Sequence record: NC_019401.1
Length of the DNA stretch: 64,000 nt
Reading direction: 5' to 3' (one strand)
The notes beneath the pieces were generated by a model. It was not told where the DNA came from, made no database searches, and saw nothing but the letters and a program-made list of their open reading frames with translations. Made by a program: the position numbers and the translations under genes. This document shows positions 6,592 through 20,863 of this stretch, piece by piece; the stretch's first letter is position 1; each line of letters starts with the position of its first letter.

Positions 6592-6599
6592 GTTTACAA

Positions 6600-6879: not shown

Positions 6880-6966
6880 TATACTTTTAAACGTGAAAAG
6901 TACTTGCAAAGAATGATTAAAAGAGTATACTTAACTTATCGAAACAAACGAGAGGATTTAAAAATG
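6880..6966 (+). repeat. promoter-RBS-ATG cassette, copies at 9235-9321, 14429-14515, partial 7213-7303
   Basis: TATACTTTYAAACGWGAAAAGTACTTGCAAAGAAT...TATCGA..AACGA..AGGATTTAAAAATGG repeated ahead of unrelated ORFs. Confidence 0.8.
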
Positions 6967-7236: not shown

Positions 7237-7300
7237 TACTTGTAAAGTGGGTAATGGTTTAGTACTGTTACCCTATCGAAACGAACTTGAGGATTTAAAA

Positions 7301-7747
7301 ATGGGAACTCCAGCATGTATCGCAGTAATGAACGATAAGAAAGAAGTTACCTGGACTTATGTTAACTATGACGGGTATTTAAACGGCGTAGGCAGAATGT
7401 TGAACGAGTATTACAACGATCTGATAATGGCTAAAAAATTGATTTCGATGGGTGATATTTCAGTACTGAAAAAGACGATGGATTGCCCGGTCGGTCACTC
7501 ATTCGCTACACCTGCCCCGGATTGCACAGTATTCTATGAGCGTGATCGAGGTGAAGATAATGTAAAACCACGTCACGGCGATTATGCTATGTTCCTGCGT
7601 TGTAATAAGGGGACAATTAGTTATATCTACACGGATGGACAATGGCATATAGTACGAGAAACAAGTAAACGCGGGGCAATTTTAGACCGTCATAAATTGT
7701 TAGTACTTGGCGAAGTGTTATCCGGTTTATATGATTTTTCGCGTTAA
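7301..7747 (+). CDS. conserved phage hypothetical protein (YDGY / HSF / RDRGE motif family)
   Basis: YVNYDGYLNGVG..GDIS..HSF..YERDRGE pattern; start reassigned after GAGG RBS. Confidence 0.8.
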   Translation: MGTPACIAVMNDKKEVTWTYVNYDGYLNGVGRMLNEYYNDLIMAKKLISMGDISVLKKTMDCPVGHSFATPAPDCTVFYERDRGEDNVKPRHGDYAMFLRCNKGTISYIYTDGQWHIVRETSKRGAILDRHKLLVLGEVLSGLYDFSR

Positions 7748-7760
7748 TTAAATTGCATAT

Positions 7761-7793
7761 AGTACTTGCAAAATTCTGCGAGTACTATATAAT
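7761..7793 (+). promoter_or_regulatory. AGTACT-paired promoter B1
   Basis: AGTACT at 7761 and 7781; TTGCAA..TATAAT. Confidence 0.75.
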
Positions 7794-7823
7794 TACTTAT
7801 ATCTTAAACGGGAGAACAAAGAA

Positions 7824-8279
7824 ATGAAAGCTAACGAATTTGAACAGAAAGTAAGAGAATCCTTTTTGAAGTACTTTCCAAACGGTCATATTCGTTTATC
7901 TAAACTTGCGTTAGGTGGCGGCTTACATATTGCTTGTGGCCTGATTGCAAACGTTAAAGAGATCACCGCCACTATTCGCGAAAATGATCCGTTAAACGTT
8001 TCTATCTTTATTCATGATAACTATGTTTTCAATGATTCAGAAACGGATCTTGATAATGTAGTACTTGAATTTGACAATTCGCATATATCGGTTATTCCTG
8101 ATAATCCGCATATGTACAGCCAATCGCACAAGATCGCCGCACGTAAAATTAACGCTGCACCAGAAAAAGCACTGCAAAACCTGGATAAGTATTTTAAACG
8201 TGTTAAAGATGTTGTATCCGAGCAAGCGGCATTAAATCGGATTATCAAACAAGATACAATTGATCCGAAATATCTGTAA
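7824..8279 (+). CDS. hypothetical early protein
   Basis: GGAG RBS, promoter B1. Confidence 0.8.
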   Translation: MKANEFEQKVRESFLKYFPNGHIRLSKLALGGGLHIACGLIANVKEITATIRENDPLNVSIFIHDNYVFNDSETDLDNVVLEFDNSHISVIPDNPHMYSQSHKIAARKINAAPEKALQNLDKYFKRVKDVVSEQAALNRIIKQDTIDPKYL

Positions 8280-8290
8280 AGTTATTAATC

Positions 8291-8326
8291 AAAGTACTTG
8301 CAAAATGAATGCGAGTACTTTATAAT
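8291..8326 (+). promoter_or_regulatory. AGTACT-paired promoter B2
   Basis: AAAGTACTTGCA-7-TGCGAGTACTTT inverted repeat, then TATAAT. Confidence 0.8.
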
Positions 8327-8356
8327 TAACTTATATTAAGTAAGAGAGAAAACAAA

Positions 8357-8779
8357 ATGAAATTAGATGTAAGAGGTTATTCTGAAGGTGGCTACTGTTT
8401 CCTGTACGATGGTAAGCCGGTTTCCATTCATGAAGCAATGGTCGCGAACGGCGGGAAGTTTTCAAAGCGTACTACTAACGCCTTGAACCGTAGAAATCTG
8501 CCTAGTGTTGAATGGCTAAAAGTGTTTGAAAAAGATGTAGCCACGTTACATACTGGCTTAGATGCTCCTGGTGCCCGTAAAGTACTGAGGGATCATTATA
8601 ACATCGATGTACTTAAACGTGACTATTATCATTTGTCAAGTTCAGAAGTATACGATCTTAAAACTGTATACAAAATGTGCAAATATAAAGTAACAGTTAA
8701 AGAACCTGCACACTCTGAGATGTACTACTTTTTCCAGTACTTGTCAAGGAAAGATGTGCATCCACTCGAAAAGAATTAA
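8357..8779 (+). CDS. hypothetical early protein
   Basis: Promoter B2, GAGAG RBS. Confidence 0.8.
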   Translation: MKLDVRGYSEGGYCFLYDGKPVSIHEAMVANGGKFSKRTTNALNRRNLPSVEWLKVFEKDVATLHTGLDAPGARKVLRDHYNIDVLKRDYYHLSSSEVYDLKTVYKMCKYKVTVKEPAHSEMYYFFQYLSRKDVHPLEKN

Positions 8780-8784
8780 TTAAA

Positions 8785-8821
8785 GAAAGGGGTTGACTTC
8801 GGTTAGCCCCTTCTGTATACT
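8785..8821 (+). promoter_or_regulatory. terminator-promoter fusion cassette A2
   Basis: GGGGTTGAC-TTCG-GTTAGCCCC; TTGACT-17-TATACT. Confidence 0.75.
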
Positions 8822-8830
8822 GTATTCATT

Positions 8831-8862
8831 GGCAGATAAAGCCGCAAGCCCATAGGGTGCAT
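8831..8862 (+). ncRNA. two-hairpin element E3
   Basis: GGC-AGATAAA-GCC, GCAA, GCCCATAGGGTGC. Confidence 0.55.
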
Positions 8863-8942
8863 AATTGTATCTATAATATTAAGAATAAAAAAAAGATAAA
8901 ATAATCCTTGCAATCAAACGATGAATAGATTAATATGTAGTT

Positions 8943-9228
8943 CTCGACACGCAATAACGCGATAACCTAAAAGAAGGAAAGCAGATATTCTATCAGGCTC
9001 ATATCCTGATAGCAGTACTAATAACCTGAGACACATAGCACACCGATAAGTCTATGTTAGGATGCATTAGCGAAAGCACATCACTGGATGAATGCATAGT
9101 ACTGGTAGAATATGCGGTATTATCTTTATAAGAGAATATATGAGATAAACTTAATGCGGCCTTAATGGGCGTGGCGTGTATCAAAAGCCACCGTTAAACG
9201 CTCCCTTAATGGGGGCGTTTTTCGTTTT
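8943..9228 (+). ncRNA. candidate 285-nt structured RNA with own promoter and terminator
   Basis: TTGCAA-17-TAATAT at 8908-8936; nested stems; ends in AAACGCTCCC/GGGGGCGTTT terminator; no plus-strand ORF of 60 aa or more. Confidence 0.65.
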
Positions 9229-9318
9229 GGATAATATACTTTTAAACGAGAAAAGTACTTGCAAAGAATGATAAAAGTAGTATACTTATCTATATCGAAA
9301 ACGAAAGAGGATTTAAAA

Positions 9319-9675
9319 ATGGTAGATATGTTCTGGAGTAGTTCGTGCGGCAGAATTGAACTTGAGTTCAAAGATCCTGAGCAGGTATTCACTATGTTTC
9401 ATAGTGGCGATTGTGAGGATTCTGTTAAGGCACAGATTCCGTACTTCCTTCCTCAATTGCAGAACATTGATCGTTCGCGTATTATTTCAGTACTAAATGA
9501 ATATTCTGGTGATTGGACAATTGGGGAGTTATTGGAACTTACACAGGAAGATCTTTACATTAAACTGTTATGGATCGCTGCTGGTGATAAACACGACGAA
9601 ATCAATATGGATGAATTGTGTGAATGGCAGAATGATTTTTTGGCAGAACGTGAACGCGAAAAACACGGCGAATGA
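9319..9675 (+). CDS. conserved phage hypothetical early protein
   Basis: HSGDC..QL..ID..L.EY..W..LLWIAAG pattern; start reassigned after cassette RBS. Confidence 0.8.
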   Translation: MVDMFWSSSCGRIELEFKDPEQVFTMFHSGDCEDSVKAQIPYFLPQLQNIDRSRIISVLNEYSGDWTIGELLELTQEDLYIKLLWIAAGDKHDEINMDELCEWQNDFLAEREREKHGE

Positions 9676-9681
9676 TCATTA

Positions 9682-9716
9682 AAAGTACTTGCAATAACAT
9701 GCGAGTACTTTATAAT
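9682..9716 (+). promoter_or_regulatory. AGTACT-paired promoter B3
   Basis: AAAGTACTTGCA-6-TGCGAGTACTTT, then TATAAT. Confidence 0.8.
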
Positions 9717-9748
9717 GATTGTACTTATTAAGTGAGAGGAAAAACAAA

Positions 9749-10129
9749 ATGAATCCAGTTTATGACGTTCACGCTGATATTGTAACCACGATGGAAAAAG
9801 TTTTTGCTGGTGGTTATGATGCACTCGCTTTTCGTAAAGAGCATGACAGATTACAAAAGCGAATTGATAACCTCAAATTGGTTAGGGATCGTTATGCTAC
9901 CAACACACTACTTACCAGTATGATTGGTAATGTAATGATGAAAAAACTGTGCCTGGCATATGAATTTGAAAAAACTCTGTATTGTACTGCCAATAACGTT
10001 CCGGGTCGTCCCAATACTGATTTTCTTCATTCATTGAATTTGTCAAGTGCTGAATGGGATGCTTTACCACAATATCACGTGTGGATTGCATCGGGTAAAA
10101 TTTACAGTACTGTGCATAAATCCAAATAA
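9749..10129 (+). CDS. hypothetical early protein
   Basis: GAGG RBS; start reassigned. Confidence 0.75.
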   Translation: MNPVYDVHADIVTTMEKVFAGGYDALAFRKEHDRLQKRIDNLKLVRDRYATNTLLTSMIGNVMMKKLCLAYEFEKTLYCTANNVPGRPNTDFLHSLNLSSAEWDALPQYHVWIASGKIYSTVHKSK

Positions 10130-10135
10130 ACAAAT

Positions 10136-10160
10136 AGGGGAACTATATGTTCCCCTTTTT
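10136..10160 (+). terminator. intrinsic terminator
   Basis: AGGGGAAC-TATAT-GTTCCCCT plus T run. Confidence 0.8.
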
Positions 10161-10175
10161 AAGTGAGATATTCAT

Positions 10176-10430
10176 ATGAATATTTTTTACCAAACTAACA
10201 GGTTATGTGTTGTATTTGATTGTGATTCTGATAAAATACAATGCGTAATATACAGGAAAGGAACGGCAGTATATGATAACTGGAAAGTACTACAATCATA
10301 TACAATGCGGCGTAAAGGTTTTAAACGCCTGGATAATCGAACACAGAAAGCGGCCTTGCGACAAATGATCAAGGCAATGCGGAACCGTCAAACAATGGCG
10401 TTAAACGTTGTACTTAACAGTAAGGAATGA
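10176..10430 (+). CDS. hypothetical basic protein
   Basis: ORF with phage-like spacing. Confidence 0.65.
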   Translation: MNIFYQTNRLCVVFDCDSDKIQCVIYRKGTAVYDNWKVLQSYTMRRKGFKRLDNRTQKAALRQMIKAMRNRQTMALNVVLNSKE

Positions 10431-10434
10431 TACA

Positions 10435-10644
10435 ATGGAACCAGAATTTAAGCCAGAACAGAAAGTAATTTTTCGCAGTACTGACAGCGGGCCAGAATAT
10501 CAAAAGCCATATGACGCTGTAGTTAATCGCTTACTTACAAGTGATGAATACGATATTCAGGACGTTGGATATATGTATGAGATCCAATTCTCTGATGGTT
10601 CTACAAAACATGCTTTTGAAGATGAATTGTCGGTACAGCAATAA
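10435..10644 (+). CDS. hypothetical small SH3-like beta protein
   Basis: AAGGA RBS; FKPEQKV..YEIQFSDG..HAFEDEL pattern. Confidence 0.7.
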   Translation: MEPEFKPEQKVIFRSTDSGPEYQKPYDAVVNRLLTSDEYDIQDVGYMYEIQFSDGSTKHAFEDELSVQQ

Positions 10645-10652
10645 TTAAAAAA

Positions 10653-10685
10653 GGGGTTGACATATGTTAGCCCCGTCTGTATACT
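10653..10685 (+). promoter_or_regulatory. terminator-promoter fusion cassette A3
   Basis: GGGGTTGAC-ATAT-GTTAGCCCC; TTGACA-17-TATACT. Confidence 0.75.
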
Positions 10686-10691
10686 GTATTC

Positions 10692-10722
10692 ATTGAAACA
10701 AATTAGCCCACAGGGTGCGGAG
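10692..10722 (+). ncRNA. two-hairpin element E4
   Basis: ATT-GAAACA-AAT, TA, GCCCACAGGGTGCGG. Confidence 0.5.
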
Positions 10723-10933
10723 GTGTATCTATTAAAAAAGTACTGTACATGTATCCAGTACCTATCAAATATAAATTCAAACGAAAAAAGTACTTGCAAT
10801 GGATGATAAAAGGAGTATAATTGTTTACATGGAAGGGCAAGAGGTGAAAGGTAATGAGTCGCAGTACTGAAATAGCTCTGTTTATCTTTGTACTAGTAGC
10901 ACTATCTATTAATTTTAATTGAGAGGATTCAAA

Positions 10934-11167
10934 ATGTCTTTATATGATGTAACTGTAAACAGTACTGGTATTGGTCGTTCTGGTACTACTAAGATGCTGG
11001 CTGTTGCTTTCTTTCCTCATATGAATGAAGCAAGACAAGGTATCAATGAGTGGGTATCAGAGAACTTTGTTGCTCCGGTAACTGTGAGTGTTGAATTAAA
11101 ATCTCACTCAAATATTATCTATCCATCAGAAGTTCAGGGATATGAGCGTATTGTAATTATTGAATAA
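10934..11167 (+). CDS. hypothetical early protein
   Basis: GAGG RBS; start reassigned. Confidence 0.7.
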   Translation: MSLYDVTVNSTGIGRSGTTKMLAVAFFPHMNEARQGINEWVSENFVAPVTVSVELKSHSNIIYPSEVQGYERIVIIE

Positions 11168-11174
11168 TTCATTA

Positions 11175-11211
11175 AAAGTACTTTGACAAAATGGTTAGAG
11201 TACTTTATAAT
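11175..11211 (+). promoter_or_regulatory. AGTACT-paired promoter B4 (identical to B5)
   Basis: AAAGTACTTTGACAAAATGGTTAGAGTACTTTATAAT. Confidence 0.8.
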
Positions 11212-11324
11212 GTAGTTATATTAAAGGCCAGCTTTCTGACAATATCAGTACTGAGCATGATCTAGAAGATCATGAAGGCACAGAATATAAAGGCTAGTGG
11301 TCTATGGATCAGGAGAACTCATAA

Positions 11325-11558
11325 ATGTTTTATATTGCAGAAGTAAAACGTAATGGCGTAGTTGTTGAAAAATCGTTAGTATGTACCAGTAATGAAATTG
11401 CTGGATATTCTTATGCTGAAGATCGTTTTAATACAGTACAAGATAATACTCCAGGTGAATACAACATTACTTTTGATTTTTATCAGCTTGATAATCGTTC
11501 TATTGTTCCGGTTATACAAATGCCGGAAGATATTAAATTTATTGTCCAATTAGATTAA
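11325..11558 (+). CDS. hypothetical early protein
   Basis: AGGAG RBS after a structured leader. Confidence 0.75.
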   Translation: MFYIAEVKRNGVVVEKSLVCTSNEIAGYSYAEDRFNTVQDNTPGEYNITFDFYQLDNRSIVPVIQMPEDIKFIVQLD

Positions 11559-11566
11559 CAACATTA

Positions 11567-11603
11567 AAAGTACTTTGACAAAATGGTTAGAGTACTTTAT
11601 AAT
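11567..11603 (+). promoter_or_regulatory. AGTACT-paired promoter B5
   Basis: TTGACA-17-TATAAT with AGTACT at 11569 and 11591. Confidence 0.8.
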
Positions 11604-11629
11604 GTAGTTATTGAGTAGGAGGAAACAAA

Positions 11630-11740
11630 ATGCAATTTGTTTTCGGTGCAATTAGCGGTATACTGATTTATCTGAATTGGGATGTTATCAGTCCCTGGAT
11701 TGAATCAGTACTGAAATTTACATTAACCTTTTTTAATTGA
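11630..11740 (+). CDS. 36-aa small membrane protein
   Basis: Not in ORF track. AGGAGG RBS; MQFVFGAISGILIYLNWDVISPWIESVLKFTLTFFN. Confidence 0.65.
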   Translation: MQFVFGAISGILIYLNWDVISPWIESVLKFTLTFFN

Positions 11741-11752
11741 GAGAAACAAAAA

Positions 11753-11956
11753 ATGGCACAGAAAGATCGTCGTTATGCAATCAATGCGGAGTTCACTGGT
11801 CACATTTCCGGTAAGAAACGTTTTGTACTGCGTTTTGAAGGTACTCGCGTATCTGATCACGGTTCCCGCTATGAGGCGGAACAGGAGATCGCGAAGTACA
11901 AGAAAGCGGGTACTATCCCTAATGTAAATGGAACACGTGTTGCAGTGGAGGCATAA
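11753..11956 (+). CDS. hypothetical early protein (paralog-like to 15384..15575)
   Basis: FEGT..EA...IAK motif. Confidence 0.75.
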   Translation: MAQKDRRYAINAEFTGHISGKKRFVLRFEGTRVSDHGSRYEAEQEIAKYKKAGTIPNVNGTRVAVEA

Positions 11957-12132
11957 TGCGGGAGTTTGCATTGTATGACAAGGTACATTTAGAACGGGAA
12001 TATCCGTTAAGTACTAAGAAAGTACTTGATACGTTGCCGGTTCTTACTGATTTAGAGGTTGAAATTATTATTAACCTCAAGGTATCAGAAAGTATTGAGA
12101 TTAATAATACTGTTATCATCCGTACAATGTAA
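11956..12132 (+). CDS. 58-aa hypothetical protein
   Basis: Not in ORF track. GGAGG RBS, start overlaps upstream stop; MREFALYDKVHLEREYP. Confidence 0.6.
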   Translation: MREFALYDKVHLEREYPLSTKKVLDTLPVLTDLEVEIIINLKVSESIEINNTVIIRTM

Positions 12133-12142
12133 AAACATTATC

Positions 12143-12179
12143 AAAAGTACTTGCAAATAGAAAGCGGGTACTTTATAAT
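12143..12179 (+). promoter_or_regulatory. AGTACT-paired promoter B6 (drives RHH gene)
   Basis: AGTACT at 12146 and GGTACT at 12167; TTGCAA-17-TATAAT. Confidence 0.75.
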
Positions 12180-12208
12180 GTACTTATATTAAGCGAGAGA
12201 ATAAAGAA

Positions 12209-12412
12209 ATGAAAAGACTTCAAATTGACGTATCGGAACAAGCATTCAATCAACTGAAAGAATTGAAGGGTAAATGTGAAAGTGCTAGTTACGCAGATGT
12301 TACCCAAAAAGCATATAAAGTACTCGACTTCTTTATGAATGCAAAAGCTGATGGCAAATCTATAATTGTCGTAGATAAAGATGGTAAAGAAACGATAGTA
12401 GAAATGCTTTAA
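12209..12412 (+). CDS. ribbon-helix-helix (CopG/Arc-like) DNA-binding protein
   Basis: Alternating N-terminal strand RLQIDVS, helix A (EQAFNQLKELK), helix B (SYADVTQKAYKVL). Confidence 0.7.
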   Translation: MKRLQIDVSEQAFNQLKELKGKCESASYADVTQKAYKVLDFFMNAKADGKSIIVVDKDGKETIVEML

Positions 12413-12422
12413 CTATATTATC

Positions 12423-12459
12423 AAAAGTACTTGCAATTAGAAAGCGAGTACTTTATAAT
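12423..12459 (+). promoter_or_regulatory. AGTACT-paired promoter B7
   Basis: AGTACT at 12426 and 12447. Confidence 0.8.
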
Positions 12460-12490
12460 GTAGTTATTGAATCAAACAGAGGTTAACGAA

Positions 12491-12793
12491 ATGAAAACTC
12501 CACATCATAAAGCGTATGAATACGATTATTACTTTGTTGGTACTGATGGTATTCCTTATGTAGCAAAAAACTATCTCGCTGTAGTTCCTGGCGTTAATGT
12601 TGAAATGCTGATTAAACGCTGGAACCTTGCGGCTGGTCATGGTCGGAAGTATGTTCTTAAAGGTGAAGTGGATCTCAAAACAGCATTATACACTCCAGGT
12701 ACTACTGGTGCGATGATTGCCACCGATTGGAAGTTACTCGATCATATGCAATTTCACGGCGTCGAATATGAAGTAAAACGCATCGCCGCATAA
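12491..12793 (+). CDS. hypothetical early protein
   Basis: GAGG RBS; start reassigned. Confidence 0.75.
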   Translation: MKTPHHKAYEYDYYFVGTDGIPYVAKNYLAVVPGVNVEMLIKRWNLAAGHGRKYVLKGEVDLKTALYTPGTTGAMIATDWKLLDHMQFHGVEYEVKRIAA

Positions 12794-12808
12794 TCAAAAA
12801 GTACTCTA

Positions 12809-12840
12809 GTACTGGTGTAATAGCCAGTACTGTTTTTTTA
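12809..12840 (+). terminator. intrinsic terminator with AGTACT stem
   Basis: AGTACTGG-TGTAATAG-CCAGTACT plus T run. Confidence 0.7.
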
Positions 12841-12870
12841 TGTACAGTACTATATCTCATAGACAGATCT

Positions 12871-12903
12871 CTGCACCCTATGGGCTTGAGCATTGTTCTT
12901 GCT
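12871..12903 (-). ncRNA. two-hairpin element E5-
   Basis: Minus strand TTGACA-17-TATATT, then AGCA-AGAACAA-TGCT, CAA, GCCCATAGGGTGCAG. Confidence 0.55.
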
Positions 12904-13029
12904 ATGTGTTAATAATATACCAGTACTTATATAATGTCAATGAAATAATTATACTTTCAAACGTGAATTTCCCCTTGCATTTATGGTTGAGTACTGTATA
13001 ATACTTGTATTGAATCGGGAGCATGAACA

Positions 13030-13275
13030 ATGAACAAAGATTTAGTACTATACAGTATTGCAATATCCCTTGCAACTGTTGTCGTATCTTTCGGAATTGA
13101 TGAAGCGAGATCTGGTATATTTTGGCAAGCTACTGTTATTGCAGAAGGGCTTGACAATTCGTTATATACATTTGTATCATATGGCCTGAATCCTGTTTTT
13201 TATATGTTGTTATGGATTGGGTTAGGTTCAATAATAGCATTTATTTTTCATTTATTTGTTGACACAGACAAATAA
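13030..13275 (+). CDS. hypothetical membrane protein
   Basis: Two hydrophobic segments; GGAG RBS. Confidence 0.7.
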   Translation: MNKDLVLYSIAISLATVVVSFGIDEARSGIFWQATVIAEGLDNSLYTFVSYGLNPVFYMLLWIGLGSIIAFIFHLFVDTDK

Positions 13276-13312
13276 AGCAGGTATAGTATTCTTATTGAAA
13301 CGGAGAGATACT

Positions 13313-13513
13313 ATGAAAGTTCAACCGATTTCTGCGATGTATAAGAATACAAATGATACCCGTCGTGAGGGTAAACCTGTAACGAAAGAAAGTGTACTTG
13401 AGCAAATTAAGTTATTCAAAGAACTGAATGGGGAAGATAGCAGTACTGTAGTTAATTTGAGTACTGATAAACTTCCTGAATTTTTGTACAATAAAGATGG
13501 TAAAATCAAATGA
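13313..13513 (+). CDS. hypothetical protein
   Basis: GGAG RBS; start reassigned. Confidence 0.65.
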   Translation: MKVQPISAMYKNTNDTRREGKPVTKESVLEQIKLFKELNGEDSSTVVNLSTDKLPEFLYNKDGKIK

Positions 13514-13522
13514 GGGTTTATA

Positions 13523-14380
13523 ATGGGTAAGTATATTAGTTTGGGTTTTGTTGGTGTTCTGGTACTGTTTTTGCTGATTACTGGTTTGAGTTCGTTCTAT
13601 ACCATTGACCAGCAAGATCGCGGTGTCATTCTGACCAACGGCAAAATCACAGGGATCGCAAATCCGGGTATGAACTGGAAAAAACCATTTATCGATAGCG
13701 TGGTTGAAATTCCGGTAACTGGTCAAAACAAAAGTTATCAGGGCTTGCAAGCGTATTCCCGCGATCAGCAAGTAGCAAACATGAACGTATCCGTATCGTT
13801 TTCCGTACCGGAAGGTAAAGTCGGCGAACTGTATAGTACTTTCGGTACTATTGAAAACCTAACTGCTCGCGTTATGGATCGCCAGATTCCACAAGCGATG
13901 GAAAACGTATTTGGGCAATACAATGCGATCTCTGCGGTCCAAGACCGTGTTAAGCTGGTGGCTGATCTAAACACCGCCGTTAAAAAAGCGTTGGAAGCTT
14001 ATCCGGTATATGTTGAAAGTGTCCAACTCGAAAACGTATCATTCAGCGACGCATATGATAAATCGATTGAAGCACGTATGCAAGCCGAAGTAGCAGTACT
14101 GAAACGCCAGCAAGATCTTGCATCCGAAAAAGTATCTGCACAGATTCAGGTAACACAGGCACAAGCGAAAGCTGATAGCCAACTTGCCGAAGCGAAAGCA
14201 GCAGCAGAAGCAACACGCCTTCAGGGTGAAGCAGATGCAGCAGCGATCAAAGCAAAATCTGATGCACTTAACAGCAATCCGCAACTGGTTCAGCTTGCCG
14301 CTGTTGACAAATGGAATGGCGTACTGCCTACTCAAATGGTTCCTGGTTCGACCGTTCCATTCGTGAATCTTAATAAGTAA
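13523..14380 (+). CDS. SPFH/band 7 (prohibitin-like) membrane protein
   Basis: N-terminal TM, YTIDQQDRGVILTNG..PG..WKKPFI, coiled coil with AEA repeats, KWNGVLP. Confidence 0.92.
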   Translation: MGKYISLGFVGVLVLFLLITGLSSFYTIDQQDRGVILTNGKITGIANPGMNWKKPFIDSVVEIPVTGQNKSYQGLQAYSRDQQVANMNVSVSFSVPEGKVGELYSTFGTIENLTARVMDRQIPQAMENVFGQYNAISAVQDRVKLVADLNTAVKKALEAYPVYVESVQLENVSFSDAYDKSIEARMQAEVAVLKRQQDLASEKVSAQIQVTQAQAKADSQLAEAKAAAEATRLQGEADAAAIKAKSDALNSNPQLVQLAAVDKWNGVLPTQMVPGSTVPFVNLNK

Positions 14381-14387
14381 GTACTAC

Positions 14388-14416
14388 AAAAGCCTAGCAA
14401 TGTCTAGGCTTTTTTA
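14388..14416 (+). terminator. intrinsic terminator
   Basis: AAAAGCCTAG/CTAGGCTTTT plus T run. Confidence 0.8.
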
Positions 14417-14512
14417 TATTTCAAAAAATATACTTTCAAACGTGAAAAGTACTTGCAAAGAATCGTACAGAGTAGTATTATCTTTATATCGACAACGAAC
14501 AAGGAAAATCAA

Positions 14513-14707
14513 ATGGAACAACATTTCGTACATATCCCTAGCCCTCTGATGTTTTCGAGAGACGCTAGATTGTCTCGCATTAAGTACTTGAAAAAGGCAA
14601 AGGCAAGTACTGATAAAGAAGGCCGTAAATGGAACTTCACTATGGCGAAGATGATGAAACGCCATGAGAAACAATGGATGGAAACTTATCAGCAGGAATA
14701 CATGTAA
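14513..14707 (+). CDS. hypothetical basic protein
   Basis: AAGGA RBS in repeated cassette; start reassigned. Confidence 0.7.
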   Translation: MEQHFVHIPSPLMFSRDARLSRIKYLKKAKASTDKEGRKWNFTMAKMMKRHEKQWMETYQQEYM

Positions 14708-14716
14708 ACATTATCA

Positions 14717-14753
14717 AAAGTACTTTGACAAATATGTTAGAGTACTTTATAAT
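14717..14753 (+). promoter_or_regulatory. AGTACT-paired promoter B8
   Basis: TTGACA-17-TATAAT, AGTACT at 14719 and 14741. Confidence 0.8.
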
Positions 14754-14784
14754 GATTATATCAAAAAACGAACTGGTGATTATT

Positions 14785-15021
14785 ATGGTTATCGAACATA
14801 ATGCATATATTCCAAAAGCAGTACGCCAAGCTTTTGATATGGTGAAGCGTGTGTATCCCAACGTTACACAAGTCGAATATGATGATAACGGTAATTGGCT
14901 TTACTCTGACGGCAAAAGCTTTTTTCCTTCATTCAATAATATTAATATTGATGTTGGAGTACTTGAACACGCCGCTGATGCCGCCTATAATGTAGGCATT
15001 CCAGTTACGTTTAAAATTTAA
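14785..15021 (+). CDS. hypothetical early protein
   Basis: Start reassigned downstream of promoter B8. Confidence 0.7.
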   Translation: MVIEHNAYIPKAVRQAFDMVKRVYPNVTQVEYDDNGNWLYSDGKSFFPSFNNINIDVGVLEHAADAAYNVGIPVTFKI

Positions 15022-15033
15022 AAAGGTAATTGT

Positions 15034-15321
15034 ATGCCGTCAATGTTCAGAAATTCAAAGAAGGTACAGACTGCATTAAAAGTAATGGATATTGTTAAAA
15101 CAAAAAACAATACCAACAATGCACCAACTTCTAAAACAAAGAAAGTAAAATCTACTAAGCAAAGTACTGTAGTTACTCTTTCTGTTATGATACAATTCCT
15201 GAAAGATAACGATGGCGATTTAGATTTGCTTTACAAAACATATGTTGGCGATCTTGAATATCGCAAACAGATGGCTGATGAAGCATATATGTTGTTCAAA
15301 AAGAATTTGAATAGCATTTAA
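15034..15321 (+). CDS. hypothetical protein
   Basis: AAGG RBS. Confidence 0.7.
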   Translation: MPSMFRNSKKVQTALKVMDIVKTKNNTNNAPTSKTKKVKSTKQSTVVTLSVMIQFLKDNDGDLDLLYKTYVGDLEYRKQMADEAYMLFKKNLNSI

Positions 15322-15357
15322 AAAGTACTTGCATTATCAATCACAGTACTATATAAT
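15321..15357 (+). promoter_or_regulatory. AGTACT-paired promoter B9
   Basis: TTGCAT-17-TATAAT, AGTACT at 15324 and 15345. Confidence 0.75.
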
Positions 15358-15383
15358 AATTATATTCAACTGAGGAAATAATC

Positions 15384-15575
15384 ATGAGTAGACGATTTAG
15401 TTATGCAGCGAAAGCTGATGGTGGTTATCAAGTACTGTTTGAAGGTACTGTAATTGATAATGCAAGTACTGTCAAAGAAGCACGTAATAAAATTGCAAAG
15501 ATAAAACGTGATGCAAAGCACAGTAATTTAGTTAATAAGTTTTTTAGTTACAGCAAAGATTTTAAACAAAAATAA
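15384..15575 (+). CDS. hypothetical early protein (paralog-like to 11753..11956)
   Basis: GAGG RBS; FEGT..EA...IAK motif. Confidence 0.75.
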   Translation: MSRRFSYAAKADGGYQVLFEGTVIDNASTVKEARNKIAKIKRDAKHSNLVNKFFSYSKDFKQK

Positions 15576-15636
15576 CTTGCATTAAACCTGAATAGAAAGT
15601 ATAATCTTTATATCAACCAAACAGAAGGGATATACC

Positions 15637-16002
15637 ATGAAAGCAGTTTACTTTGCAACCAGAACTCTCGCTCGCAACGCTGTTGAAGAACTGAACGGTA
15701 AGTTCAAAGATTTTGGTACTGACGCCCCGAAAGGTGAACGCTGGGCAGTGCTGGTGGAAGAAACTGTACAGAACAATCAACTGTCTGTACAGGAAGAAAT
15801 TAACACTGCTCCCACAACTCCGGTACAGCAGATCACTGAAAGTCTTATTGACTATTCAGAAGCAATCACAGTACTGGATCGTCCGGGTTCCATTATTGGG
15901 GAACAAACTTTACGTACCCCAAATAACAAGCCTGTACGTACTTTGTGGCGTCGTAACAAAACGGCAATGCGTTTGGCTGCTCATATGGAAGCAACCGCTT
16001 AA
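15637..16002 (+). CDS. hypothetical early protein
   Basis: AAGGG RBS, host-like codon bias. Confidence 0.8.
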   Translation: MKAVYFATRTLARNAVEELNGKFKDFGTDAPKGERWAVLVEETVQNNQLSVQEEINTAPTTPVQQITESLIDYSEAITVLDRPGSIIGEQTLRTPNNKPVRTLWRRNKTAMRLAAHMEATA

Positions 16003-16010
16003 AACTCGGT

Positions 16011-16037
16011 TGGGGCATTATATGATGCCCCTTTTTT
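16011..16037 (+). terminator. intrinsic terminator
   Basis: GGGGCAT/ATGCCCC plus T run. Confidence 0.8.
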
Positions 16038-16050
16038 AAGGTTAATCCAT

Positions 16051-16293
16051 ATGAAAAAGTTAACAATTGATAATACACAATTGCGTGTGCATTTCAAAGC
16101 AAGTACTAAAATACTTGATAGAGCATTACGTGTTGTGAAAGATTTCAATAGTGGGCAAATAAGACCGCGAAGATTAGGTTGTGGATTGTTTGAAGTTCTG
16201 GATGTTTCGCGTAACGAAAGAATCGTTATTAAAGATCGCAAACTTAATCTAATGACGCATGAACAATATAACAAGTTCGTTGAACGCCGTTGA
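16051..16293 (+). CDS. ParE/RelE-like toxin-fold small protein
   Basis: F..G.IRPRRL..L.V...RI...LMTHEQYN matches the enterobacterial ParE-like family pattern (from memory). Confidence 0.55.
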   Translation: MKKLTIDNTQLRVHFKASTKILDRALRVVKDFNSGQIRPRRLGCGLFEVLDVSRNERIVIKDRKLNLMTHEQYNKFVERR

Positions 16294-16347
16294 CAGAATC
16301 CCCTAAATATGAATATAATAAATTTATAGTCATTAGGGGATTTTATT

Positions 16348-16869
16348 ATGCCTGGAACATTTAGAAGTAAAAACGGGGCAACACTATCTGGACACTCAGA
16401 TAAATGGAGTAATGCTAACCGTAGTCCTAACAGTCATGATGCAGGACAAGGATCAAAAGGTAAACGCAATCAAGGAACCGGTATTCAAGGGAAACTAAAC
16501 ACTATGCCATCACAAGGCGTAGATACTTCCAAAATGAAGCCGGAACAAAAGTTAAAGTACTTTCAATCTTTAGGGTTAATGCCTGGCGTGGCTCCTGAAC
16601 CAGAACCAGAAGTTAAGCCAGAACCTGCACCAGACCAACGCAACAAAGTACAAGCTCTTACTCAAGACCTACAGAAAGTATTCGCGAACAATCCAAACTA
16701 TCTACACAGTATTGTACAGCAATTAAAAGAAGTGCCACCAGCACAATTTAAAAAAGCGGTATTCGCTGCTTACAGAGCTATGCAAGAAAGTACATCACAA
16801 CAAAATGTAGATCCTAAAGAAGTACTAACTCATATACAAGATGCAATTAATCAAAGTATATACGATTAA
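16348..16869 (+). CDS. hypothetical protein with disordered N-terminus and PEPE linker
   Basis: ORF with own promoter TTGACA-18-TATAAT. Confidence 0.75.
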   Translation: MPGTFRSKNGATLSGHSDKWSNANRSPNSHDAGQGSKGKRNQGTGIQGKLNTMPSQGVDTSKMKPEQKLKYFQSLGLMPGVAPEPEPEVKPEPAPDQRNKVQALTQDLQKVFANNPNYLHSIVQQLKEVPPAQFKKAVFAAYRAMQESTSQQNVDPKEVLTHIQDAINQSIYD

Positions 16870-16933
16870 TATTTGACAGAACAATTTTCGTCTGATAGTA
16901 TTAAGTTATCAAACACAAACAGGGTACTATCAA

Positions 16934-17278
16934 ATGAAAAGGATTATGTTAGTAGGATTGATGTTCGCATGTGTCAGTACTGTACAGGCTGAAATGCTTA
17001 CCTGTACTAGCTCGACACTTTCTTTCCGTAACAACGATGGAAGTTACTCGGAAAAGGCAGGTACTAAACTTACCGATATTTCCATTGAAGTACAGGAACA
17101 ATCGATCACTATGTACGCTGGTGGATTAGACCGCCTGGAATTCTGGAAAGATTATAATGAGTACCGCAATGATAGCGGGAAGATCGTTCGTAATGGTAGT
17201 ACTTTCTCTATGTATACTACTATTCCAACCGATACAAACAACATGCAGCCAATCAAAGTTGATTATATCTGCAAATGA
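16934..17278 (+). CDS. exported/periplasmic protein with Sec signal peptide
   Basis: MKRIMLVGLMFACVSTVQA cleavage-like motif. Confidence 0.75.
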   Translation: MKRIMLVGLMFACVSTVQAEMLTCTSSTLSFRNNDGSYSEKAGTKLTDISIEVQEQSITMYAGGLDRLEFWKDYNEYRNDSGKIVRNGSTFSMYTTIPTDTNNMQPIKVDYICK

Positions 17279-17285
17279 TTCAAAT

Positions 17286-17321
17286 AAAAGGTTGACTACG
17301 GTCGGCCTTTTTTGTTATACT
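17286..17321 (+). promoter_or_regulatory. terminator-promoter fusion cassette A4
   Basis: AAAAGGTTGAC-TACG-GTCGGCCTTTT; TTGACT-18-TATACT. Confidence 0.75.
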
Positions 17322-17330
17322 TCTTTCATT

Positions 17331-17362
17331 GGCAGATAAGCCGTTAGCCCATTGGGTGCATA
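17331..17362 (+). ncRNA. two-hairpin element E6
   Basis: GGC-AGATAA-GCC, GTTA, GCCCATTGGGTGC; about 55 nt identical to the E7 locus. Confidence 0.55.
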
Positions 17363-17527
17363 GTTGTATCCTTTTTAAGTACTTTCTACTTTGAAAATAT
17401 TATACAAAAACTTGTAATTTCTTCTTGCAGATTAATCTGAATTTGGTATTATATACACATCGAGACGGGGCAACGTCTTAGATAAACTAAGCGAGCGAGA
17501 AAGAAAATGCGGCGTAAATGAATTTAT

Positions 17528-17564
17528 AAAAGGAGTTGACAGCGGTTGACTCCTTTAGTATAAT
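17528..17564 (+). promoter_or_regulatory. terminator-promoter fusion cassette A5
   Basis: AAAGGAGTTGAC-AGCG-GTTGACTCCTTT; TTGACA-17-TATAAT. Confidence 0.7.
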
Positions 17565-17609
17565 CATCCCATTCAAACAAATGTAGTACTTTCTAAAAGG
17601 CATAATATC

Positions 17610-17837
17610 ATGAGAAACATCGTCGAAGTACTGTTTAACGCATCAAGAGAAGTTTCCGAAGAAGAACGCCAGGCTTCCGAAGTCATTAGCGATCTTTGCC
17701 AAAAGCATGAGCTTGTCTTACCTGAACAACTTATGGCTATGAATTACTTTTCAGGTATTGACTTCAATCTGATTGTATCAAAGGTTAGTACTCTTAACAC
17801 GCCGTTGATACCCGAAGCAATGTTTTATACACATTAA
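17610..17837 (+). CDS. hypothetical early protein
   Basis: AAGG RBS, promoter A5. Confidence 0.7.
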   Translation: MRNIVEVLFNASREVSEEERQASEVISDLCQKHELVLPEQLMAMNYFSGIDFNLIVSKVSTLNTPLIPEAMFYTH

Positions 17838-17845
17838 TAAGTAAT

Positions 17846-17882
17846 AAAAGGCTTGACACGTTCGAGCCTTTTTTGTTATACT
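17846..17882 (+). promoter_or_regulatory. terminator-promoter fusion cassette A6
   Basis: AAAAGGCTTGA..TCGAGCCTTTT; TTGACA-18-TATACT. Confidence 0.75.
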
Positions 17883-17891
17883 TCTTTCATT

Positions 17892-17922
17892 GGCAGATAA
17901 GCCGTTAGCCCATTGGGTGCAT
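17892..17922 (+). ncRNA. two-hairpin element E7
   Basis: GGC-AGATAA-GCC, GTTA, GCCCATTGGGTGC. Confidence 0.55.
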
Positions 17923-18055
17923 AATAGTACTAGTACTATAAGAAAATAAAAATATAAATTCAAACGAAAAAAAACTTGCATTCAAATAACAGTACTGGCA
18001 TAATACTTACATGGATTAGGGAATGGCCTTAATCATTTTAAGCGAGAATACTATC

Positions 18056-18631
18056 ATGAAATTCGAAGAACTGAACGAAGAACAAAAAGCTAGAGCAATT
18101 GAAAAACATCGCGATATCAACGTTGACTATGACGAATGGTATGATTTTGTAAAAGAAGAACATCATTCTAAACTGGAAGAAGTTGGTTTTTCTGGTGTAG
18201 AGTCTGCATATTCTGGATTCTGGTCACAAGGTGACGGTGCAAGTTTTACTGCTGATAGCCTGGATATTGAGAAGTTTTTACGTGCAACTAAACGCTGGAC
18301 TTATTATCGTCCGTTGCATGAAATGATCCGTATTAATGAAATATGGGCTAAAGTAGTTCGTACTACTCACCGCTACTGTCACGAAAACACAACTCAAGCA
18401 GAGTTACACGGTGAACATTACCTTAATTTAACATCGCGTCAAGAATCTTTGTATGAAGAACTTGAAAAGGAAATTGATGAATATATCACACGTGCAGGTC
18501 AAGAGTACTATCGCGATCTGAATACTGCATATGATGATTTAACTTCTGACGAACAAGTTAAACTATCAATCATTGCAAATGATATGGACTTTGAAGAAGA
18601 CCCACGTGAATCAGGCATAACTTATCTTTGA
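18056..18631 (+). CDS. conserved MGE protein (family often auto-annotated as antitoxin of toxin-antitoxin stability system)
   Basis: F.EL.EEQK.RA..W..YSGFWSQGDGASF..Y..LTSDEQV..IIAND.DF pattern; start reassigned. Confidence 0.75.
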   Translation: MKFEELNEEQKARAIEKHRDINVDYDEWYDFVKEEHHSKLEEVGFSGVESAYSGFWSQGDGASFTADSLDIEKFLRATKRWTYYRPLHEMIRINEIWAKVVRTTHRYCHENTTQAELHGEHYLNLTSRQESLYEELEKEIDEYITRAGQEYYRDLNTAYDDLTSDEQVKLSIIANDMDFEEDPRESGITYL

Positions 18632-18640
18632 CAAGTACTC

Positions 18641-18678
18641 AAAGGGGATTGACTAGTTCAATCCCTTTGTTGTATAAT
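18641..18678 (+). promoter_or_regulatory. terminator-promoter fusion cassette A7
   Basis: GGGATTGA-CTAGT-TCAATCCC; TTGACT-18-TATAAT. Confidence 0.7.
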
Positions 18679-18698
18679 AACAATACGGAGACAATAGA

Positions 18699-18797
18699 AT
18701 GGTTGAGTATACAACTATCAATCCGGTATATGAAGAAGGGAAAGCAATGAACAAAATTGCTTTATGTTTTATACTTTTTATAGTACTTTTATTATGA
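18699..18797 (+). CDS. possible 32-aa membrane peptide
   Basis: GGAG RBS after promoter A7; MVEYTTINPVYEEGKAMNKIALCFILFIVLLL. Confidence 0.35.
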   Translation: MVEYTTINPVYEEGKAMNKIALCFILFIVLLL

Positions 18798-18945
18798 GAC
18801 TACTTAAACAGCATAGCGAAGTATCTTTGTATAGTAGTATGGGATTGTTTTTAGTATCAAAAGGCCGGACAAAAATAACTTGCAAAAGTGGTGTAACTGC
18901 ATTATACTTCTTTCATCAACTAACCAATATTAAGTGAGTACTGAA

Positions 18946-19278
18946 ATGAGAAAACCTAACGTAGAAATTCTTTGTGATTCACATCACGGAATTTATATTC
19001 CGTCTATCATGATTCAACGTCTGGTAGATAATGGCTGGCGTAACATTCCTGATGATGCAGTTGAAATTCTCAAAGATCCTAATCATGAATGTTATTGGGA
19101 AACGTGGCAAGAAGTACTGGACAATGCTGAATGGCATGATGCAAGTACTAGCCAGGTTTTCAAACTGCATCATGACGGCGATCTGTTTGCAGTATGCCCT
19201 GAAAGTTGTACGCCACAAGAGTATCATCATATCTATGGTGAATATCCTGAATGGTACAACCAGGAAGAAGAAGTATGA
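18946..19278 (+). CDS. conserved phage hypothetical early protein
   Basis: HHGIYIP..YWETWQEVLDNA..HDGDLFA pattern. Confidence 0.8.
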   Translation: MRKPNVEILCDSHHGIYIPSIMIQRLVDNGWRNIPDDAVEILKDPNHECYWETWQEVLDNAEWHDASTSQVFKLHHDGDLFAVCPESCTPQEYHHIYGEYPEWYNQEEEV

Positions 19279-19411
19279 TCCAGTATTGGTGGCTTGAGCC
19301 AGTACTCTATCTGATTGTAGCACTCACCGCATTATATGTAGTTGTTACAATCTTTGGTTAAATTCAAAAAGTACTTGACTCCGGTCAGGTACTTTGCTAT
19401 TATGTATACAT

Positions 19412-19445
19412 AGCAAGAACAATGCTTTAGCCCATAGGGTGCAGC
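19412..19445 (+). ncRNA. two-hairpin element E8
   Basis: TTGACT promoter at about 19375; AGCA-AGAACAA-TGCT, TTA, GCCCATAGGGTGCAG (same hairpin 1 as E5-). Confidence 0.55.
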
Positions 19446-19565
19446 AGTGTAGCTATAGTATAAGGATGTAACTGAAACAAATATAAAGTTAAATGAAAAA
19501 TCCCCTTGCTTTCTTTCTTTCGTGTGGTATACTTTAATTATTGAAACAGAGCGGAGTAGAAAGAA

Positions 19566-19808
19566 ATGGAAAAGTCTGGAATTGAATTTAAAGTCCGTAA
19601 GTGGTCTGAACATGGTGCTCGCCGCCCATTCGACGTGGTAGCACTGGATCACGACAACAACAAACAGCACTACCAGCCAGGCTGCACTTTCAGTACTGAA
19701 GATGGGGCAAAGCGTCATCAGGCAATACTGGAAAAACGTATTAAAGATGTACCAAACAGTATTAAGTTTATTCGTGACTGCTGGCCTGTAGACGGCGGTA
19801 TTGAATAA
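19566..19808 (+). CDS. hypothetical early protein
   Basis: GGAG RBS and own promoter. Confidence 0.75.
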   Translation: MEKSGIEFKVRKWSEHGARRPFDVVALDHDNNKQHYQPGCTFSTEDGAKRHQAILEKRIKDVPNSIKFIRDCWPVDGGIE

Positions 19809-19833
19809 AGATTTAAATAAAGATTCAAATGAA

Positions 19834-19870
19834 AAAAGTACTAGACAAAAACGATTTAGTACTTTATAAT
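19834..19870 (+). promoter_or_regulatory. AGTACT-paired promoter B10
   Basis: TAGACA-17-TATAAT, AGTACT at 19837 and 19858. Confidence 0.7.
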
Positions 19871-19899
19871 TTAAAAACTAAATGAGTGGAGACACGAAA

Positions 19900-20787
19900 A
19901 TGTTAAAATTATACAAAGGTATTAACGGCCTGGCACTGAAATCAAATCGCCCTCTTAACAGAGCGGAACTTCTGGAAGTAGTCCCTTCTATCTTTGCAAT
20001 TGAAGGGCATTCTTCACGTAGCTCCCGTTTCGCACCAGTTGCAACGATTGATGTACTGGATCGCCTGGCACAAGAAAACTACTTTCCGATGTTTGCTATT
20101 CAGTCGCAAACACGCGATGCATCAAAACGCGATTATACTAAACATATGATCCGTTTGCGTCAGCCGGGTAAGCAGGAAGGTGAAGCAAACGAAATCATCC
20201 TGGTAAACGCCAATGATGGCACAAGTGCATATCAGTTGATGGCAGGTCAATTCCGTTTTGTATGTTCTAACGGTTTAGTTATGGGTGATATGTCTCATAA
20301 CACGAAGATCTACCACAAAGGCACTGACATTATGGACGATGTTATTGAAGGTGTTTACACGGTGGTTAAAGACTTTGATGAAATCGAACGCTACAAAAAG
20401 GAAATGAAGCAGATTCAACTTAGTACTGAACAACGCGATTCCTTTGCAATCGCCGCCTATATCATGAAAGAAGGTTTACCGGAAAACGGCGATTGGGCGA
20501 ACGCAGTATATCAGCCACGAGCATTACTTTCTACGAAAGACCTGAACACGCTGGATCGTTATGATAACAGTCTGTACAGTACTTTTAACACTGTACAGCA
20601 ACATATGATGGCTGGTGGGCAACGTGGCTATAATCCACATACTGGCCGCCGTCGCTCAAGTCGTGAAGTAACGAACATCGACAAAAACATTGATCTGAAT
20701 AGTACGTTGTGGCGTACTGCGATGAAAATGGTAGACCAATATAGTCTACTGAAAAACGCAGAACCTGAAGAATTAATTCAGTTCTAA
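19900..20787 (+). CDS. DUF932 (DUF945/YubP-like) protein
   Basis: PSIFA..HSSRS.RF..T..L..E.YFP..QS.TRD..KR.YTKHMIRLR; NANDGTSAYQLMAGQFRFVCSNGLV; LYSTFNTVQ. Confidence 0.88.
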   Translation: MLKLYKGINGLALKSNRPLNRAELLEVVPSIFAIEGHSSRSSRFAPVATIDVLDRLAQENYFPMFAIQSQTRDASKRDYTKHMIRLRQPGKQEGEANEIILVNANDGTSAYQLMAGQFRFVCSNGLVMGDMSHNTKIYHKGTDIMDDVIEGVYTVVKDFDEIERYKKEMKQIQLSTEQRDSFAIAAYIMKEGLPENGDWANAVYQPRALLSTKDLNTLDRYDNSLYSTFNTVQQHMMAGGQRGYNPHTGRRRSSREVTNIDKNIDLNSTLWRTAMKMVDQYSLLKNAEPEELIQF

Positions 20788-20794
20788 GTCAAAT

Positions 20795-20830: not shown

Positions 20831-20863
20831 TGCATTTGACAACGTAAACGGAGTAACGGAACC

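Follow-up and report, generated by a model that had tools for sequence, protein, structure and literature searches.

Paired AGTACT boxes at early promoters of Cronobacter phage vB_CsaM_GAP32 as candidate operators for a factor reading a genome-wide palindrome

We analysed a 64,000-nucleotide stretch of sequence record NC_019401.1 (hereafter the window), which corresponds to bases 1-64000 of the 358,663-bp genome of Cronobacter phage vB_CsaM_GAP32 (genus Mimasvirus). The focus was the interval 7761-19870, which is 100% identical to the same positions of GAP32 and whose early promoters carry paired copies of the palindrome AGTACT (the boxes). Our analyses suggested that these boxes are operators for a putative factor that reads AGTACT throughout the genome and most likely shuts off the near-consensus early promoters, a reading to which we give a probability of roughly 45%. 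According to the proposed mechanism, ten near-consensus host (sigma-70) promoters would each drive one or a few small genes of an early-gene island, and their boxes would be the promoter copies of a word kept by selection at about 1000 genomic copies in all enterobacterial RaK2-like jumbo phages. A putative dimeric factor would read the 8-bp sequence HAGTACTD all along the phage DNA; at the early promoters two bound dimers would flank the -35 hexamer on one face of the helix, and the factor, once present, would shut off, or at least modulate, promoters that are otherwise constitutive.

The window contains 290 copies of AGTACT, compared with 17.3 +/- 3.9 in shuffled sequences. Within the interval there are 80 sites, which form 10 pairs at a spacing of 20-22 bp; random placement of 80 sites gave a mean of 1.56 such pairs and a maximum of 8 over 20,000 trials, and 10 pairs were never reached. 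Nine promoters carry two perfect boxes and a tenth, in front of the gene gp021, has the degenerate second box GGTACT (Table 1; promoters are named below by the first base of box 1), in agreement with the initial annotation, which had counted at least 10 such promoters and had placed gene 12209..12412 behind the degenerate one. All ten have a TATAAT -10 element, a -35 element with 0-2 mismatches and a spacer of 16-17 bp, and each is followed by a Shine-Dalgarno sequence and start codon 25-40 nt downstream. On sequence grounds they thus show the features of strong sigma-70-type promoters (a -35 close to TTGACA, a -10 close to TATAAT, a 16-18 bp spacer and a downstream gene), and the description of early host-type promoters with operator-like palindromes at fixed positions still stands. 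GenBank lists about 30 small hypothetical genes in the interval, every one on the + strand, and three promoters, as against at least ten of the two-box class plus a class embedded in terminator hairpins; two of the ten two-box promoters are among those annotated (11183-11211 and 11575-11603). A complete two-box promoter lies inside the 5' end of gp027 (annotated at 14674-15021), so its annotated start is probably too far upstream and the true start is probably the ATG about 30 nt past the -10. Another AGTACT pair, at 14583/14606 and 23 bp apart, is intragenic and has no promoter.

The positions of the boxes were also recovered by a scan of GAP32 and of the initial 30 kb of four relatives, in which nothing but the -35 and -10 hexamers was used to call promoter-like sites (149 unique sites in five genomes). 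Relative to the first -10 base, AGTACT starts at -29 to -27 in 46 of these sites and at -8 to -7 in 36, and is nearly absent from the other positions between -50 and +20. Box 1 either overlaps the -35 by its final T (AGTAC-TTGCAA) or abuts it (AGTACT-TTGACA), and a single base separates box 2 from TATAAT, as in the arrangement at first proposed. Each box keeps to its own hexamer, box 1 to the -35 and box 2 to the -10, and the 20-22 bp spacing therefore tracks the 16-17 bp spacer. Box 1 occupies about -41 to -36 and box 2 -19 to -14, with centres near -38 and -16.5, and both boxes are predicted to lie on one helical face, flanking the -35 hexamer. Among the 46 promoters with box 1, the box 2 position holds AGTACT in 29, GGTACT in one, AGTAGT in one and otherwise unrelated sequence. 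Promoters with the -35 box alone, of which the initial annotation had expected many, amount in GAP32 to a handful (about four in the window and about four elsewhere).

The word itself extends far beyond the promoters. AGTACT is the commonest hexamer in the GAP32 genome, with 1011 copies against about 121 expected, an 8-fold excess, and 872 of these sites lie inside open reading frames (ORFs), in all three frames (418/153/301). A regulon restricted to the early promoters, as was first suggested, is consequently too narrow. The only context preference is symmetric, with no G before and no C after the hexamer (HAGTACTD), which argues for a signal at the DNA level rather than one acting in RNA or protein. 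The excess stands in a genome with no GCGC at all (353 expected) and with zero copies of 27 of the 64 six-base palindromes. AGTACT thus shares the features of a highly iterated palindrome of the HIP1 kind, namely a many-fold excess in coding and non-coding DNA independent of reading frame. A mutational drive of the very-short-patch-repair type was rejected, as the near-cognates AGTATT and AATACT are not depleted (ratios of 1.26 and 0.98). No paper on the AGTACT word or boxes in these phages was found in the literature searched, which did not extend to the GAP32 genome paper; the paper on the sister phage CBB lists RpoD-like promoters and does not mention the boxes.

The flanks of the word also bear on a host protein. 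AGTACT might recruit the nucleoid-occlusion protein SlmA and thereby block cell division or coat the phage DNA; the published SlmA site GTGAGTACTCAC has an AGTACT core (PMC3020112), and the word is enriched in enterobacterial phages and not in the Pseudomonas relative PA5oct. However, SlmA requires G and T at half-site positions 1 and 2 (PMC3020112), and in the phage GT/AC flanks occur at chance frequency (48 and 49 of 1011), full GTNAGTACTNAC sites number 2, and the SlmA-like flank GAGTACTC is the rarest 8-mer context, with 2 copies. The phage sites therefore do not show the GT at positions 1-2 and AC at positions 11-12 around AGTACT that characterise SlmA binding, and we regard recruitment of SlmA as extremely improbable.

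Three of the promoters (8293, 9684 and 12426) form inverted repeats with 11-12 bp arms and 6-9 nt loops, bearing out the report of several such repeats; their folding energy as single-stranded DNA is -7.7 to -9.0 kcal/mol (z -4.2 to -5.8). Such folds would suit a purely structural explanation, in which supercoiled or single-stranded DNA would extrude the repeat as a cruciform or hairpin and this shape would set the activity of the promoter, no sequence-specific reader being needed. This is very unlikely in our view: the remaining promoters have AT-rich arms of only 8-9 bp that fold weakly (z about -2.3 to -2.7, at -3 to -5 kcal/mol), promoters of the related phages RaK2 and 121Q retain both boxes without extended arms, and structure leaves the 872 intragenic sites, which are isolated copies, unexplained.

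The enrichment is common to the relatives of GAP32, with AGTACT counts of 1235 in CBB, 1105 in XbC2, 1078 in pEa_SNUABM_12, 1072 in BF, 937 in RaK2, 903 in 121Q and 817 in PHA46; GCGC is also at zero in RaK2 and 121Q. The related Pseudomonas phage PA5oct has 15 AGTACT, 337 GCGC and no two-box promoters. Two-box promoters were present in every AGTACT-rich genome scanned for them (GAP32, CBB, XbC2, BF, pEa_SNUABM_12, RaK2 and 121Q), and PHA46 was scored for the word only. At least 11 of them occur in RaK2 and at least 7 in 121Q, with the boxes positioned as in GAP32, so that the architecture is conserved over Mimasvirus, Eneladusvirus, Alcyoneusvirus and Asteriusvirus. In GAP32, RaK2 and 121Q the two-box promoters lie in a single segment of 20-30 kb in which AGTACT density is 2.5-3 times the genome average. 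A pattern search of six genomes returned 65 unique two-box promoters with 54 different spacer cores, indicating that the boxes are held while the intervening sequence drifts.

These comparisons bear on a passive explanation, in which the boxes have no role peculiar to promoters: a genome-wide selection for AGTACT would place the word, in short intergenic regions, at the only sites free of constraint, before the -35 and within the spacer, and the cassettes would multiply through duplication and recombination, as do the promoter-stem-loop (PeSL) cassettes of T4-type phages. Near-identical cassettes within one genome (11177, 11569 and 14719) are what such spread would leave, AGTACT also occurs in terminator stems (12808-12831) and in coding sequence in every frame, and the small AGTACT-rich proviruses described below hold the word without two-box promoters. 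On the other hand, intergenic DNA of the first 20 kb holds 12 sites per kb and the genes there 4.9 per kb (about 2.5 per kb elsewhere), and box positions are exact to 1-2 nt across the four genera and the 54 spacer cores. In addition, passive spread does not predict that middle promoters should be essentially without the word, and these, the TGAAACG type described for CBB and GAP32 (PMC5259590), have one AGTACT site in 23 windows of 110 bp, where about 7 are expected. We consider passive placement unlikely.

A scan of IMG/VR for AGTACT triplets led to two small proviruses, G001 (29.5 kb, 85 AGTACT) and G002 (31.8 kb, 103 AGTACT), both GCGC-free and with a G+C content of about 37-38%. Relatives of G002, about 30 kb long, are integrated in Pseudescherichia vulneris, Pseudescherichia sp. 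and Escherichia sp. ESNIH1. Per 2 kb, the prophage side of the junction holds 2-13 AGTACT and no GCGC and the host side no AGTACT and 15-31 GCGC, the switch being completed within 2 kb. Neither the phage collection nor complete E. coli genomes contained a nucleotide match to the integrated provirus, and no two-box promoters were found in the small AGTACT-rich proviruses. A single gene common to the jumbo phages and the small proviruses was rejected as an explanation of the word: the genes that the proviruses share with GAP32 are just a lysozyme, an HNH homing endonuclease and the methyltransferase GAP32_140, a weak negative given that the provirus contigs are incomplete. In phages of these hosts the word may be purged as well as hoarded; the T4-type phages RB49 and RB43 and Aeromonas phage 65.2 have zero HAGTACTD, and a control word occurs in them 53-73 times. 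A further IMG/VR contig (G005) carries about 50 AGTACT between 4.4 and 10.8 kb, at multiple-of-3 spacings and within one gene; this array is a Ser-Thr-rich protein repeat and a different phenomenon.

The ribbon-helix-helix (RHH) gene gp021 was the reader named in the initial annotation, which proposed that this protein, or another factor, controls the boxes. Its classification as an RHH protein held. The 67-residue product itself falls under the Pfam thresholds (VapB antitoxin, E 0.11), and an exhaustive HMMER search gave 38 homologs, several of which (among them P0015, P0021 and P0036) match RHH_1 in the aligned stretch at 27.5-37.5 bits (cut-off 20.5). An AlphaFold model built with 32 sequences has a pLDDT (predicted local distance difference test) score of 94 and shows an extended N-terminus, helices at 10-23 and 28-47 and a beta-hairpin at 52-64. 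The best superpositions were on NikR (1.1 A over 37 columns) and the RHH domain of PrpA (2.1 A over 49 columns), with MazE matched too, although the Foldseek E-values of these matches are not significant for so short a chain. By profile and model, gp021 is a genuine RHH protein. RHH dimers read short palindromes of 6-8 bp, as in MetJ and CcdA, and the promoter of gp021 bears boxes of its own, both of them perfect in the CBB orthologue; both points speak for cooperative binding of gp021 to the boxes, by which it would switch early promoters including its own.

The distribution of gp021 argues strongly the other way. In a tblastn search of 50,697 phage records the gene occurred within the clade only in GAP32 and CBB, in copies that are 100% identical, and its profile hidden Markov model (HMM) matched neither the complete RaK2 and 121Q genomes nor the early regions of XbC2, BF and pEa_SNUABM_12. 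The boxes are thus found in seven related genomes and gp021 in two, and PHA46, which is rich in the word, lacks the gene as well. Other homologs are found in Ea35-70-like phages and in OBP, where AGTACT is scarce (Ea35-70 has 54 sites and OBP 70, in genomes of about 270-285 kb); a word-index protein search with gp021 matched nothing except gp021 itself. This double dissociation, boxes without gp021 and gp021 homologs without AGTACT, indicates that gp021 is not the clade's AGTACT reader, and its control of the boxes is, in our judgement, very improbable.

Other candidate readers were then sought among the 126 GAP32 proteins that are kept in RaK2 and 121Q and undetectable in PA5oct. A Pfam screen of 96 small ones among them returned a small Dam-family adenine methyltransferase, a C5-cytosine methyltransferase and an HNH nuclease. 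Both methyltransferases are present in GAP32, RaK2 and 121Q and absent from the AGTACT-poor PA5oct, which fits a methylation switch: AGTACT would be the target of a phage methyltransferase that marks phage DNA, and the state of the mark, full on injection and absent or hemi-modified after replication, would alter the early promoters. A phage that has shed 27 palindromes and yet holds 1011 ScaI-type sites would, moreover, need protection from enzymes that cut AGTACT. However, an 8-fold enrichment is needless for a modification target. The C5 enzyme was rejected as the reader, as its closest homologs outside the clade (about 50% identity) belong to AGTACT-poor phages (PaulScherrer with 1 site, ICP1 with 15 and Saba with 1). 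GAP32_140 (79440-80183), a third methyltransferase with 47% identity to the enzyme of provirus G001, is also encoded by RB49, RB43 and Aeromonas phage 65.2, all without HAGTACTD, and by KP27, which has 17 such sites, and is therefore not tied to the word. We judge a methylation switch to be improbable. A ScaI-type restriction-modification system was not recognised either: a six-frame translation of the genome gave no RE_ScaI match at E <= 1, and none of the encoded methyltransferases could be assigned AGTACT specificity. The half-sites of the host regulators LexA and TrpR are spaced 18 and 14 bp apart, and neither spacing is enriched among the AGTACT sites. ESM Atlas look-ups of the early-region proteins gp030, gp032 and the ORF at 5390-5674 yielded nothing usable.

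An operator role for the boxes remains our favoured reading, and within it repression is favoured over activation. The core elements lie near consensus (TATAAT, TTGACA or TTGCAA, 16-17 bp spacer) and one box is situated in the spacer beside the -10; near-consensus promoters typically need a repressor rather than an activator, and P22 Arc is one of the repressors that typically use a spacer site next to the -10. As some 20 promoter sites would face competition from about 1000 genomic ones, the putative factor would need to be plentiful and would resemble a phage nucleoid protein more than a classical repressor. Several points weigh against the operator reading. First, the 96 small proteins of the conserved set that were compared with Pfam contained no helix-turn-helix or RHH regulator, at least 73 of them being without any family. 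Second, the same competition makes a classical low-copy repressor unlikely. Third, some promoter copies within a genome, such as 11177 and 11569, arose by recent duplication, and part of the conservation is accordingly by descent. Fourth, the choice of repression over activation is argued from general rules only, and the public runs with this DNA are metagenome contigs, with no infection transcriptome among them.

In CBB, the genes homologous to the GAP32 interval fall within a terminal repeat of 22,456 bp, to which about the first 24 kb of GAP32 correspond, and the interval is therefore very probably part of a long terminal repeat that forms an early-gene island. Two genes in the middle of the island, gp032 (16348-16869) and gp025 (13523-14380, Band_7/SPFH), are annotated as virion components in GAP32 or CBB, and gp032 is one of just five early-island genes kept in RaK2 and 121Q. 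In this context, an immediate reader of AGTACT might be sought among proteins that enter the cell together with the DNA. A host-encoded or virion-carried reader may be in play, because the signature is limited to enterobacterial phages and has arisen convergently in an unrelated provirus without a common DNA-binding gene; the nominal Xanthomonas host of XbC2 weakly favours a phage-encoded one. A broader and somewhat unlikely proposal is that AGTACT is a new kind of sequence-encoded 'self' label, on which enterobacterial jumbo phages and an unrelated provirus family converged, keeping it at very high density while deleting GCGC and most other palindromes. A host or virion reader would recognise this label from the first moment of infection and protect, organise or license the phage DNA, and the early promoters of the first-entering terminal repeat would be wired to that reader.

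Additional features of the region are collected in Table 1. At 12808-12831, the stem of a rho-independent terminator is made of two AGTACT copies spaced by 18 bp, so the word is built into terminators too; the CBB counterpart lies at 10171-10208 and is Torf26 in the supplement of the CBB paper. A second class of sigma-70-like promoters has the -35 in the loop or arm of a G+C-rich terminator hairpin (aaaGGGG-TTGAC-ttcggt-tag-CCCC ... TATACT), with the consequence that the terminator and the next promoter overlap.

Table 1. Promoters, genes and AGTACT-bearing elements in the GAP32 window, with two methyltransferase genes (coordinates are the same in window and genome).
Feature	Position	Strand	Details
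AGTACT hot zone	1..30000	.	47-68 sites per 10 kb, about 24 elsewhere
Two-box promoter, gp011	7761..7793	+	box 1 7761-7766; -35 TTGCAA 7766-7771; box 2 7781-7786; -10 TATAAT 7788-7793
Two-box promoter, gp012	8293..8326	+	box 1 8293-8298; box 2 8314-8319; -10 8321-8326; 12-bp inverted repeat
Two-box promoter, gp014	9684..9716	+	box 1 9684-9689; box 2 9704-9709; -10 9711-9716; 12-bp inverted repeat
Two-box promoter, gp018	11177..11211	+	box 1 11177-11182; -35 TTGACA 11183-11188; box 2 11199-11204; -10 11206-11211; GenBank promoter
Two-box promoter, gp018A	11569..11603	+	near-copy of the 11177 promoter; GenBank promoter
Promoter of RHH gene gp021	12146..12179	+	box 1 12146-12151; GGTACT 12167-12172; -10 12174-12179
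gp021, 67-aa ribbon-helix-helix protein	12209..12412	+	C-terminal beta-hairpin
Two-box promoter, gp022	12426..12459	+	box 1 12426-12431; box 2 12447-12452; -10 12454-12459
Three AGTACT copies, no promoter	12808..12851	+	first two (12808/12826) are the arms of a terminator hairpin, then a T run
Two-box promoter within annotated 5' end of gp027	14719..14753	+	
Two-box promoter, gp029	15324..15357	+	box 1 15324-15329; box 2 15345-15350; -10 15352-15357
Single-box promoter	19370..19403	+	AGTACT abuts TTGACT; spacer GGTACT pairs into a hairpin; GenBank stem-loop 19371-19392
Two-box promoter, gp039 (DUF932)	19837..19870	+	box 1 19837-19842; -35 TAGACA; box 2 19858-19863; -10 19865-19870
Hairpin-embedded promoters	window 8789-8826, 10650-10690, 17536-17564, 17850-17882, 18645-18678, 20795-20830; genome 338300-351500		
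Small Dam-family N6-adenine DNA methyltransferase	36342..36884	+	PF05869, E 7e-27; in RaK2 and 121Q, not PA5oct; candidate modifier
C5-cytosine methyltransferase, 288 aa	286477-287343		in RaK2 and 121Q, not PA5oct

Several known systems resemble the arrangement in part. P22 Arc/Mnt and other RHH repressors likewise use short palindromes between or beside the -35 and -10 of a strong phage promoter, with a small RHH gene in the same region, but the GAP32 site also occurs about 1000 times outside promoters, its copies are 20-22 bp rather than 11 bp apart, and most phages with the sites lack the RHH gene. HIP1 (GCGATCGC) of cyanobacteria is, like AGTACT, a single palindrome many-fold over-represented genome-wide, in genes and in all frames; AGTACT is found in lytic jumbo phages and a small provirus family instead of a cellular genome, and in GAP32 it is locked at fixed promoter positions in a genome otherwise purged of palindromes. 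TF1, a DNA-binding protein that Bacillus phage SPO1 makes in abundance, favours sites at early promoters and inhibits early transcription. It thus combines genome-wide binding, early-promoter preference and early inhibition as in the model proposed here, but TF1 recognises hydroxymethyluracil DNA and not a defined palindrome, and no HU-like or other candidate was found in GAP32.

In the Dam/GATC-sensitive promoters of IS10 transposase, P1 cre and dnaA, a short palindrome overlapping the -35 or -10 serves as a methylation site throughout the genome as well, and GAP32 encodes Dam-family and C5 methyltransferases, which are at most candidate modifiers of AGTACT; GATC in those systems, however, is not enriched as AGTACT is in GAP32. 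PeSL cassettes likewise place repeated promoter modules of about 45 bp beside many early genes that are small and evolve fast. The repeated promoter modules of GAP32 and its promoter class with the -35 inside a terminator hairpin might be mobile cassettes of this kind, whereas PeSLs consist of a promoter and a stem-loop, act as recombination substrates and come without a genome-wide palindrome.

If a factor does read AGTACT, it would govern the very first genes expressed by an entire clade of 350-kb phages, some of which are candidates for phage therapy or biocontrol of Cronobacter, Klebsiella, E. coli, Erwinia and Pectobacterium. With such a reader, the virus would mark its own DNA by sequence rather than by base modification, which would be a second kind of self-marking. 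At 35 bp the two-box promoters are compact, their boxes can be mutated without touching the -35 or -10, and they could be used as bait for the reader.

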